A DNA stretch of 64,000 nucleotides, from contig NIVC01001499.1 in the NCBI GenBank assembly GCA_002269645.1, positions 62,001-126,000 on the forward strand. The letters are read 5' to 3'. A program made the translations under genes and the position numbers. A model generated the notes under the pieces. That model saw only the letters and a program-made list of their open reading frames with translations, did not search any database and was not told where the DNA came from. Below, in pieces: positions 51,901-54,900 of this stretch (the first letter of the stretch is position 1; each line of letters opens with the position of its first letter). Source of the DNA: Macrostomum lignano (Eukaryota).

Positions 51901-54900
51901 CCGTGATGTAAGTTGCGAAAAACGTAATTACAGTTTTTTTTATTTACATCGGTTGTCATTCGCAGATTACATGTCGCCACTTGTTACCTAATATACAGTA
52001 ACGTACATTCAGATCTACGCTATTACACGTCATCATGCCCTCCACTACTACACGCCTTATGCTGCACCAAATGACCCCATGTAGCTGTGGAAGACATATG
52101 GAAGACATGGAAAAGATAATGGACAACACGAAACGGAAGCAGAAATATGTGAGCTGTCCCTCAGCCGTGCGACCGCTCTCGCCCTTTCATGTCATACGAA
52201 CGTTTATGTGGAAATGCATTTGTGGAAGTACACCGCATGTGCTGTAGTACGCACTAGGCGAGACGCCAAAACTTCGGTTTTTAGTAAAGTGCAGTAAATG
52301 CATCGTAGCACGATATTTATATGCAGTTCATCGAGGGCACTGTAAATAGGGGGAAGGAGATCGGTACATCCATTACACTACTGTCTTAAATGCTGCGTCG
52401 AAATGCGACAGATGTATAGCTGTGCAAGATAAGACGTGCGTGGGAGACATGGAAACAAGAAAGGATGACCGGTATGTCAAAAGTAATATATATGGAGAAA
52501 AACTGGCACTGTTGCTGTGCGCACGTGGCAGGACGCCAAAACCGCACTGTCATACTGTACAGTAAATGCATAAATGCAAGGTAGCACGATATTTATATGC
52601 AGTTCATCGAGGGCACTGTAAATAGGGGGAAGGAGATCGGTACATCCATTACACTACTGTCTTATGCTCACGTCATCACTGTCACCGCCCCATATTGGCT
52701 AGCTCCGGCAAATCAATGCGCAGATGAATGTCACGATTTTTGTTCACGACGGCAGCGGCGTGGTGCCACATTTCAATGTTACTCGTGGGCAGTTCCGTCC
52801 AACGGATGTAAACTTCCAACAGGCTCGGGCATTCCCTGGCCAGCAGCGTCAGACAGTCCGGCGTAACGGCGGTGCCATCGAGCCACAGCCAGTTAAGGCT
52901 GGTCGCGACGGAACAGGTGCACAGACGCGATAGACTGCCATCGTCGAGGCTGGGGCAGTTTGCGAGCGTCAGTTCGAGCATTGCAGCAGAGGCGTGGTCG
53001 GCTGGACGAATACCTGCAGGAGGGAGAGTCTCCCAGGCTTTGCCCGTCACCAGCCGACAGTCCAACAAGTGCAGGCACTGCAGCTGTGGCAGCGTGAGTA
53101 ACAGACAGGCCACGAGACTGTCGTCGCAGGCGGGCCACGAGATAGTCACGTGAGTCAGGCCTGCGTACGGATGGAGAAGTGTACATAGTAGCGTCCAGTG
53201 TGCAGTGTGTAGGTCTAGAGCGGAGGCGTGCGCACCATACAGGATGAACATGCATGCCTCATAAAGACTAAGACTAACGTCACGTGCATGCACATTTGTG
53301 CGTCAAATGTAATATGCACCACACTCACCACGACATCCGCCGAGAGCGGTCGCGAATGCAGGCTCACCGACCCTGATCCCGCAAGCTTCGTCGGTGGGCG
53401 TGACGTAAAGCTGCAGCACTCGTAGCGACGGAGGTAGCCGAGTGCCACGGAAAACGTCGGCAGACCCGGCTGGCGCGTCCGGACTGGCAGCTATCTGGTA
53501 TCTCAGCCGCGTCAAGTCGGGCAGCTCCTGGCAGGCCAACCGGAAGCCCTCCGCGCCCAGACTGAGGCAGTGGACGAGGCTTAGGCTTTGGAGCCCAGGC
53601 CAGCACTTCAGCAGTTGCCGCAGGCCCCACACGGTCAGCTTGTCGCCTGCGTCCAGATGCAGGTGACGCAGGTTGGCGCCCTTGAGGCCGACTCGTGCAG
53701 CAATTTGACCGGCGATGGCATCCGTGACGACCTGGCTGTGCACGGTCAAGCGCTGTAGCTGGTCTCCCTGCCCGCTGATGATGTCGAGCAGCACTGAGAG
53801 ATAAGGAAGGGTGCATTTCGTCGTTAAAACGCATTCATTATTTAGAAAGAAATTAATGGTTGCACACAATTCCCGGAGAAGGCCTATACGTAATTACTAA
53901 GCCCACTACGAAGTGACTATTTTTAAATGGATTGTAACAACATGCCTCGTGTAGCCCTGGCCGGAGACGGGGATGCCGGCGGGTCTAGGGTGACCTCACG
54001 CAGCCGGGTGAAGCGGCACCAGCCTGTAGCGATGGCCGCTGCTACGGGACCAGCTGAAGTGGCAAGCATGTCTGCGCGGACATGCAACACCTGTAGGAAT
54101 GCCGGAGAAGGGGGGGGTGAAGTTAATAATATTAATACATAGACAGCCATCTCGACTAAAAGGACTGTGCCATGTGACATGAGAACGTATGTGACATGGG
54201 TCATATGACCTTACTGTTTGAGCAATTATACATGCCGTATTACCTGTATGCGGCCCAGCAGTCGGCAAAAGGGTGCAGCGCACTGTGCGACGTCGCCACC
54301 AAAGATTTCCTCGCCGTCTGTCAACAGCTCCAGCTTCTCCAGTCTGGGACAACCGTCGCTCAGACTGGCCAGCGCCTCCGGGTTGAAGATGCCTGGGCAT
54401 TCTGCCAATGATAGCTCCCGCAGTTGTAGGCAACTGCGACCAGCCACCGTGAGGAGGTTTGGGCCGCCGGTGTACTGGCCCATGTCCAGCAGGCGGAGCG
54501 TACGCAGCTCGCCGCAGCGCAGAAGGAGCGTGGCAGCGCGGTCGATGGCGATCGCGCTAGGCGGCTCGAACACGGTGCCCAAATCTAACTCTTTCGCCGC
54601 CGTCGCCAAGGTCATGAGCCGTGCCGCTGTGCTGTAGTCGTCCAGTGCAGTGGCGGTGACAGGCAGTCTCTCCCACAACACTGGTGCGCGGACGACGTCT
54701 GCCCAACGGCGGCATACTTGTGCGCACACCAGCCGAGTGGGTACCGTGAGGTGCTGCAACACCTGCATGAGCAACTCCGACGGCAGCACGTCAATGGTAG
54801 GTGGGGCACGGCCGGTCGATGACTGCATCGCTCGGCAGTTCGGCGGAGCTGTAATCCACATGCGAGGGACGGGGTTCAAATAAACTTGATTACTGTATTA

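Follow-up and report, generated by a model that had tools for sequence, protein, structure and literature searches.

We analysed a 64,000-nucleotide stretch of the Macrostomum lignano genome (the window), which matches contig NIVC01001499.1 in assembly GCA_002269645.1 (Mlig_3_7) at 100% identity. Our results show that positions 47080-61594 of the window are a mobile, very recently active DNA transposon of Macrostomum lignano, and that this 14.5-kb element contains a complete F-box/leucine-rich repeat (LRR) gene that is not decaying. The element has three genes, all on the minus strand: a transposase-like gene, the F-box/LRR gene, and a third gene. The explanation that we modestly favour as a whole is that a recently active element, similar to the CACTA-Mirage-Chapaev (CMC) transposons, retains a host-derived FBXL gene as an accessory gene encoding an adaptor of the SKP1-CUL1-F-box (SCF) ubiquitin ligase. 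The descriptive part of this explanation, taken alone, we hold with high confidence.

The element carries an intact F-box/LRR gene

The F-box/LRR gene occupies positions 52682-54861 on the minus strand, exactly the coordinates at which an earlier note on this DNA had placed an intact gene of this kind. It runs from an ATG at 54861 to a stop codon ending at 52682 and is divided into four exons. Exon 1 (54861-54244, identical in the protein records P0001 and P0129) contains the ATG, the F-box at amino acids 23-66, and the first LRRs. Exon 2 (54090-53946) is followed by a GC-AG intron with the donor GAG/GCATGT, which is confirmed by the annotated protein; exon 3 (53793-53329) ends at the donor CGTG/GTGAGT; and exon 4 (53160-52682), which shares homology with the final exon of the host paralogues described below, encodes the C-terminal LRRs and the stop. 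An exon-3 donor at 53368, giving a product of 555 amino acids, was replaced by the one at 53329, 39 nt downstream, which matches the GenBank protein PAA75384.1. As the earlier note had claimed, the four exons are free of stops; their 568-amino acid translation is the same as the complete PAA75384.1 (BOX15_Mlig022939g5), annotated on another copy of the element, and its first 390 residues are the same as the partial GenBank protein BOX15_Mlig022939g3; the two GenBank proteins fall into a single 90% cluster.

The gene models of M. lignano were assembled from RNA-seq data (PMC5730564), indicating transcription of both the F-box/LRR gene and the third gene, with splicing as in their models. A lack of expression, which according to the earlier note would have pointed to decaying cargo, is therefore contradicted by an annotation derived from transcripts. 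A search of the literature for the transcript identifier Mlig022939 returned nothing. Directly 3' of the F-box/LRR stop, we noticed a direct duplication of ~120-160 bp (52240-52360 versus 52500-52660), for which duplicated 3'-end signals are one possibility.

We next consider the encoded protein. Its F-box was recognised by the Pfam models F-box-like (PF12937, E = 1.1e-12, 47.9 bits against a cut-off of 24.3) and PF00646 (E = 2.8e-9), both at amino acids 23-66, and shows the canonical pattern LP-ELL...C..VC.RW...LW. The repeats announced in the earlier note are present as well, in a number higher than the ten or so given there: we counted 15 LxxLxL cores at a spacing of 25-30 residues, and a single-sequence AlphaFold model contains 16 regular strand/helix units. 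Searching PDB sequences with phmmer retrieved FBXL2 (1.5e-5) and SKP2 (3.4e-5), with alignments extending from the F-box through the Cys-containing LRRs. The best Foldseek match was the FBXL2-SKP1 structure 6o60_C (E = 2.8e-13), followed by MAX2/D3, COI1, FBXL17, and TIR1; the top matches are all SKP1/ASK1-bound F-box-LRR receptors. Two results speak against this assignment: the Pfam LRR models remained below cut-off, and the confidence of the AlphaFold model (predicted local distance difference test, pLDDT) is a modest 57.8 overall, less than 50 in the F-box region, and poor in the N-terminal 90 residues. Taken together, these data exclude a chance explanation of the F-box/LRR assignment.

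The protein thus resembles the animal FBXL proteins FBXL2, SKP2, and FBXL17, which are substrate receptors of SCF, in having an N-terminal F-box followed by Cys-containing LRRs of ~26 residues. It differs from them in sharing only 14-18% identity in the structural alignments, in having no orthologue outside Macrostomum, and in being encoded in a mobile element.

The gene lies within a recently mobile DNA transposon

The protein is encoded on seven contigs, six with the P0001 record and one with the P0129 record. Compared with the window, the element loci are >99% identical; the homology starts and stops at the same nucleotides, 47080 and 61594, and the flanks of the copies are unrelated to one another. 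Two loci, L003 and L005, represent one insertion on redundant contigs, as is expected given the neopolyploid assembly (PMC5730564), and were counted once, giving five distinct insertion sites, all five of which contain the F-box/LRR gene. A flank divergence of ~3% between L003 and L005 proved to be a BLAST artefact of tandem repeats, as global alignment gave one insertion.

In the window, the element is bounded by a perfect 14-bp inverted match between the left terminal inverted repeat (TIR) CCCGATTGAAAATC (47080-47093, plus strand) and the right TIR GATTTTCAATCGGG (61581-61594, minus strand). A target-site duplication (TSD) TAA is found at both ends (47077-47079 and 61595-61597). TSDs were read at the four sites with both ends visible, the left end of locus L002 being a run of Ns, and are 3 bp long at each: TAA in the window, ATC in L001, CAG in L003/L005, and ATT in L013. 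Inside the TIRs, both ends carry arrays of the 8-mer TCGGCACT. The left array (47094-47700, plus strand) has 27 copies in a single orientation, all within the left 620 bp, and the right array (61100-61580, minus strand) has 22 inverted and 9 direct copies within the right 495 bp. By comparison, the 13.4-kb interior of the element contains the 8-mer twice, and the remaining 49.5 kb of the window not at all.

A 12.7-kb variant of the element lacks two intergenic segments, 55305-56607 (1.3 kb) and about 51423-52201 (~0.8 kb). This variant was found at two unrelated sites, L001 (4317-17026, TSD ATC) and L013 (4318-17037, TSD ATT), indicating that it transposed after its deletions arose. The L013 copy is inside an intron of a Rhomboid gene, and the copy in the window occupies, in antisense orientation, an intron of a Cys-loop receptor gene, whose ligand-gated channel exons are at ~46209-46496 and 61725-62195 on the plus strand (annotation Neur_chan_LBD/Neur_chan_memb).

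The termini, the 3-bp TSDs, and the five insertion sites bear out the proposal that the F-box/LRR gene is internal to a DNA transposon. The element is of the cut-and-paste type and apparently autonomous, and it represents a currently active family of transposons that had not been classified before.

The insertion target in the window is a tandem array with a unit of ~24 bp, GGGGCGCCAATCTCTAATGTGTCA (46590-47050 and 61600-61670), and similar short direct repeats, GTTGTGCCAWKTCTATAAG, flank the insertion on both sides. The L001 insertion is likewise in a tandem repeat, and the element may have a target preference for repeats.

The element resembles CMC transposons

The transposase-like gene consists of a core open reading frame (ORF) of 516 amino acids (57622-59172, minus strand), a downstream ORF of 215 amino acids (56826-57473, minus strand) that shows no differences between copies, and a putative N-terminal ORF of 294 amino acids with acidic and Ser-rich repeats (59655-60539, minus strand). 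The only homologue of the core ORF that we found is a 17-member cluster of hypothetical proteins from the tick Ixodes persulcatus (E = 2.4e-7). The putative N-terminal ORF matches the acidic N terminus of this tick homologue in strand and position. Very long micro- and minisatellite tracts that give spurious long ORFs (SLSL..., AAALATA..., SVSQ...) were noticed at 44366-45349, 48686-49471, 59700-60170, 62156-62908, and elsewhere; they lie partly within this N-terminal ORF and the tail of the third gene, and their length varies between copies.

The motifs of the core ORF are D124, D214, C(2)C at 233-236, LH at 321-322, H(4)H at 463-468, and E488. In a pairwise alignment with the tick homologue, D124, D214, C233, C236, H322, H463, H468, and E488 are invariant, and where the element has H(4)H, the tick protein has H(3)H. 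By inspection against the published definitions, the core ORF therefore has the DDE/C(2)C/H(4)H pattern of CMC transposases. This motif set is diagnostic of the group, whose TSDs are 2-5 bp long (PMC4079192, PMC12730594), a range that includes the 3-bp TSDs at our four sites. The general organisation also has a parallel. En/Spm likewise has short TIRs, subterminal arrays of short motifs, and more than one gene.

Other data count against membership. The transposase class was assigned by motif inspection, without a profile match: Pfam gave no match to the core ORF or its tick homologue even at E <= 10, a PDB profile search with the transposase-like ORF returned only noise, and an AlphaFold model of the ORF from a two-sequence alignment reached a pLDDT of just 32.5. 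Moreover, the CMC termini 5'-CAC...GTG-3' (CACTA for EnSpm) are absent; all copies have CCCGATTGAAAATC...GATTTTCAATCGGG, with CCC...GGG as the outermost letters. Compared with CACTA/EnSpm, Mirage, and Chapaev, the element thus differs in its termini, CCCGATTG...CAATCGGG instead of CAC...GTG or CACTA, and in lacking a profile-level match to Transposase_21, the only homologue found being an unannotated tick protein. We therefore describe the element as CMC-like, without counting it among the CMC transposons proper. GenBank annotates no transposase here, which is uninformative because transcripts overlapping the repeat annotation were removed before submission (PMC5730564).

Two other classifications were rejected. 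PIF/Harbinger, which the TSD of the window copy (TAA) had brought to mind, is incompatible with the TSDs ATC, ATT, and CAG at the other sites, and neither DDE_Tnp_4 nor a Myb gene was found. A Pack-type or transduplicating non-autonomous element is incompatible with the long intact transposase-like ORFs and the completeness of the captured gene.

A tblastn search also detected a relic of 31 codons (56105-56197, minus strand) with 61% identity to amino acids 375-405 of the transposase-like ORF. The relic lies just upstream of the F-box/LRR gene, inside a segment that is deleted from the 12.7-kb variant, and may be a trace of an old rearrangement there. It could stem from a related element or from the acquisition of the F-box gene itself.

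The third gene (48678-50938, minus strand) is annotated as 605 amino acids (653 in one copy) and was called in L001-L004 and L013. It is composed of a 422-amino acid ORF (49670-50938), whose middle part is coiled-coil-like, and an Ala-rich low-complexity tail; no recognised domain was found in Pfam or PDB. The earlier note had placed the F-box/LRR gene between a transposase and a BEN-like gene. A transposase-like neighbour is indeed there, but the BEN label finds no support, as neither the 422-amino acid ORF nor the C-terminal 117 amino acids matched BEN in Pfam at E <= 10, and there was no BEN domain among the PDB matches.

The F-box/LRR gene derives from a host FBXL family

We searched for relatives of the element's F-box/LRR protein in two protein collections. 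In 5.8 billion proteins, searched with a word index, the element's own protein was the only match. An exhaustive HMMER scan of 1.84 billion representative proteins gave 115 matches, five of them below 1e-10 besides the element's own protein, and seven of the 10 matches that we looked up are M. lignano F-box proteins of ~500-550 amino acids. The best of the M. lignano matches are 25-37% identical to the element's protein. The paralogues are collinear with it from the F-box to the C terminus, and they share 30-48% identity with one another and 25-33% with the element's protein. A profile search with the alignment of the F-box family retrieved a single LRR protein, unrelated, beyond the query cluster itself.

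The genomic setting of these relatives is different. At five paralogue loci (L006-L009 and L012), we found no relative of the transposase-like gene or of the third gene, no TIR, and no TCGGCACT; the neighbours are ordinary genes, encoding PDZ/PID, WSC, Ig, and PH proteins and an RNA polymerase subunit. A Logan contig with the match P0011 likewise shows unrelated, gene-dense surroundings and no transposase. Some of the host paralogues are in tandem, at L008 10031-20528 (three matches within 10 kb) and L007 2409-13285, which indicates local expansion of a fast-evolving, lineage-specific family. The clade of transposon-borne copies that the earlier note had envisaged did not emerge, as there is a single transposon-borne sequence, and its nearest relatives are host genes without transposon context.

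The gene structures agree with a common origin. Four host genes were compared with the element's gene, and in each of them the last intron coincides in the alignment with that of the element. The element's gene also shares with the host family (for example PAA61999.1, PAA68542.1, PAA66287.1, and PAA50306.1) its collinearity and an exon plan in which the first coding exon is large and the C-terminal one covers ~150 amino acids. The host genes differ in lying amid ordinary genes, without transposase, TIR, or motif array. These comparisons place the element's gene in a host FBXL family specific to Macrostomum, as a captured member that has diverged deeply. Its capture was at the level of genomic DNA, given that it has kept introns and that the last of them has the same position as in the host genes.

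Coding sequences vary less than non-coding DNA of the element

The earlier note had proposed a test for purifying selection across the copies. The ratio of nonsynonymous to synonymous substitution rates (dN/dS) between copies was not computable because the F-box/LRR coding sequence (CDS) is identical in all of them, the lone difference within the gene being intronic. As a substitute, we compared variable sites among the five independent copies, with tandem repeats and gap-adjacent columns masked. The non-coding DNA of the element has 12 variable sites in 4,392 nt. Compared with this, the F-box CDS has none in 1,707 nt (4.7 expected, p = 0.019), the transposase core none in 2,094 nt (5.7 expected, p = 0.009), and the third gene one in 1,269 nt (3.5 expected, p = 0.18). 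This deficit of substitutions in the CDS is not what neutral decay would give. Furthermore, the deletions that separate the copies are all intergenic and spare the three genes, and the disruption that the earlier note expected of a decaying gene was seen in none of the copies.

A second line of evidence concerns the longer history of the gene. The element's protein agrees with the consensus of the host family at 63% of strongly conserved versus 19% of variable columns (Fisher p = 4e-15, a value that alignment bias inflates somewhat). Although no host relative exceeds 37% identity, the gene has kept its ORF and splice sites intact, and its product the F-box consensus and the LRR periodicity. 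Deep divergence together with these intact features indicates constraint at the protein level during most of the gene's history.

Several points weigh against retention by the element. Seven of the 12 non-coding variable sites cluster near the left end, in one 1.4-kb stretch. The CDS substitution deficit rests on small counts, which mutational or assembly heterogeneity could explain, and it is suggestive only. The constraint could date from a time when the gene still belonged to the host, if its parent has been lost or is unannotated. All known copies go back to a single burst, no older than the last ~1% of divergence, and we found only one transposon family with the gene and no diverged sister family or other species in which the transposase and the F-box gene had been inherited together over a long time. 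The gene nonetheless behaves like the transposase core and unlike the non-coding DNA of the element. For that reason we infer, with moderate support, that the element lineage has retained it as a useful accessory gene.

Discussion

The general biology of F-box proteins suggests how the product of the F-box/LRR gene would act. The F-box of the 568-amino acid protein would most likely dock on host SKP1, and the solenoid of ~15 LRRs would bring at least one substrate to SCF to be ubiquitylated. In M. lignano, SKP1 is enriched in proliferating cells and needed for spermatogenesis (PMC9740662). The element might keep an SCF receptor of its own, drawn from a fast-evolving host FBXL family, that sends a host transposon-control factor, such as a protein of the PIWI pathway or of chromatin in germline or neoblasts, to the proteasome, a proposal to which we give only a small probability.

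The main rival to retention as an accessory gene is passive cargo. Here, a whole host FBXL gene would have been captured shortly before the burst, for example through gap repair or a composite rearrangement, and would have had no time to decay while bringing no benefit. The copies are >99% identical, so that intactness across them says little; the relatives are ordinary host genes; the related-transposase relic just upstream points to a past rearrangement; and capture of host sequence is known for transposons of the CACTA, MULE, and Helitron types (PMC13317346, PMC8903248, PMC11417382). Against this, no parent gene above ~37% identity was found in the 5.8-billion or the 1.84-billion collection, which include both M. 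lignano annotations. The significantly lower number of differences in the CDS and the transposase core than in non-coding DNA, and deletions that avoid all three genes, also argue against a neutral passenger. Finally, most captured sequences are fragmentary, in contrast to this gene, which is complete, spliced, and backed by transcripts. These data weaken passive cargo, which we regard as unlikely although still the strongest competitor.

Within the preferred explanation of an accessory SCF adaptor, the earlier note had proposed counter-defence, in which the F-box/LRR protein directs a silencing component (PIWI/Argonaute, the pathway of PIWI-interacting RNAs (piRNAs), or heterochromatin) to SCF-dependent degradation. 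This sub-case is speculation. It is consistent with the SCF-adaptor architecture, with PIWI/piRNA silencing of transposons in the germline and neoblasts of M. lignano (PMC4604429), and with the enrichment of SKP1 in proliferating cells noted above, and it has precedents in VANC (PMC5735166) and TET/JBP (PMC12730594). On the other hand, specificity is not readable from the LRR surfaces, and DNA repair, the cell cycle, or handling of the transposase would be equally compatible targets. We regard counter-defence in particular as improbable.

Self-regulation is less probable again. In this case, the F-box protein would turn over the element's transposase or third protein and so limit the damage caused by transposition, for which the co-location and common orientation of the three genes is the sole support; the host paralogues have no transposase partner, which means that the target recognised ancestrally was a host protein. 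Segmental duplication or assembly redundancy of a host locus in the neopolyploid genome, for which L003/L005 and L002 with its twin are redundant pairs, is ruled out by junction analysis, as there are five flanking contexts, the homology of all copies ends at the same nucleotide, and the ends have perfect inverted repeats with a different 3-bp duplication at each site.

Accessory genes are known in other DNA transposons, including VANC in the VANDAL MULEs (Mutator-like elements) (PMC5735166), TET/JBP in fungal DNA transposons, and SET in oomycete Harbinger/MuDR (PMC12730594), and Helitron-like elements carry the ubiquitin/SUMO-system domains OTU, UCH, Ulp1, and FBA_3 (PMC11417382). Our element resembles these in having a gene of a host-pathway type beside the transposase in an autonomous element. 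None of them has a complete F-box/LRR substrate receptor, however, and they are backed by conservation in many families or by experiments, whereas ours is one young family. The closest F-box case is a gene fragment, a homologue of CG12520, captured by telomeric retrotransposons of Drosophila, for which a conflict over host control has been discussed (PMC13534243); those are fragments in retrotransposons, and here a full-length spliced gene is in a DNA transposon. The reverse is also known, as Caenorhabditis F-box genes have captured a mariner helix-turn-helix domain (PMC12062965). In the literature that we searched, no case turned up of a complete F-box/LRR receptor gene on an autonomous animal DNA transposon.

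There is, in addition, an analogy with parasites, and it may hold in concept only. Polerovirus P0, nanovirus Clink, poxvirus Ank/PRANC proteins, Agrobacterium VirF, and Legionella AnkB are F-box adaptors that redirect host SCF. They have no homology to the element's protein and combine minimal F-box-like motifs with other domains, whereas the element encodes a bona fide FBXL of host descent.

Counter-control by transposons is well documented in plants and fungi (VANC, TET/JBP) and hardly in animals. If the gene serves the element, mobile DNA would co-opt the ubiquitin-proteasome system in a virus-like manner, and the rapid lineage-specific diversification of F-box families would be linked to genetic conflict. 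If counter-defence were true, the gene would be the transposon counterpart of the viral F-box suppressors. Even as cargo, it illustrates cleanly how an animal DNA transposon can capture and amplify a whole gene. M. lignano is unusually well suited to experiments on these questions: RNA interference and transgenesis are available, its SKP1 and PIWI genes are known, and the element evidently still moves.

Other features of the window

Outside the element, the window contains two further mobile sequences. An intact piggyBac-type transposase ORF of 570 amino acids (19550-21262, minus strand; Pfam DDE_Tnp_1_7, E = 3e-61, and zf-Tnp_2) may represent a second potentially active DNA transposon. The Pol region of a long terminal repeat (LTR) retrotransposon (14689-18368, minus strand) has long open frames, with matches to RVT_1, RT_RNaseH, Integrase_H2C2, and rve in adjacent ORFs of 764 and 486 amino acids. 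On the plus strand, we found exons of an SLC4-type bicarbonate transporter at about 7700-12270 (HCO3_cotransp, E = 8e-96) and an ORF with a fibrinogen C domain at 23315-24316 (E = 5e-34).

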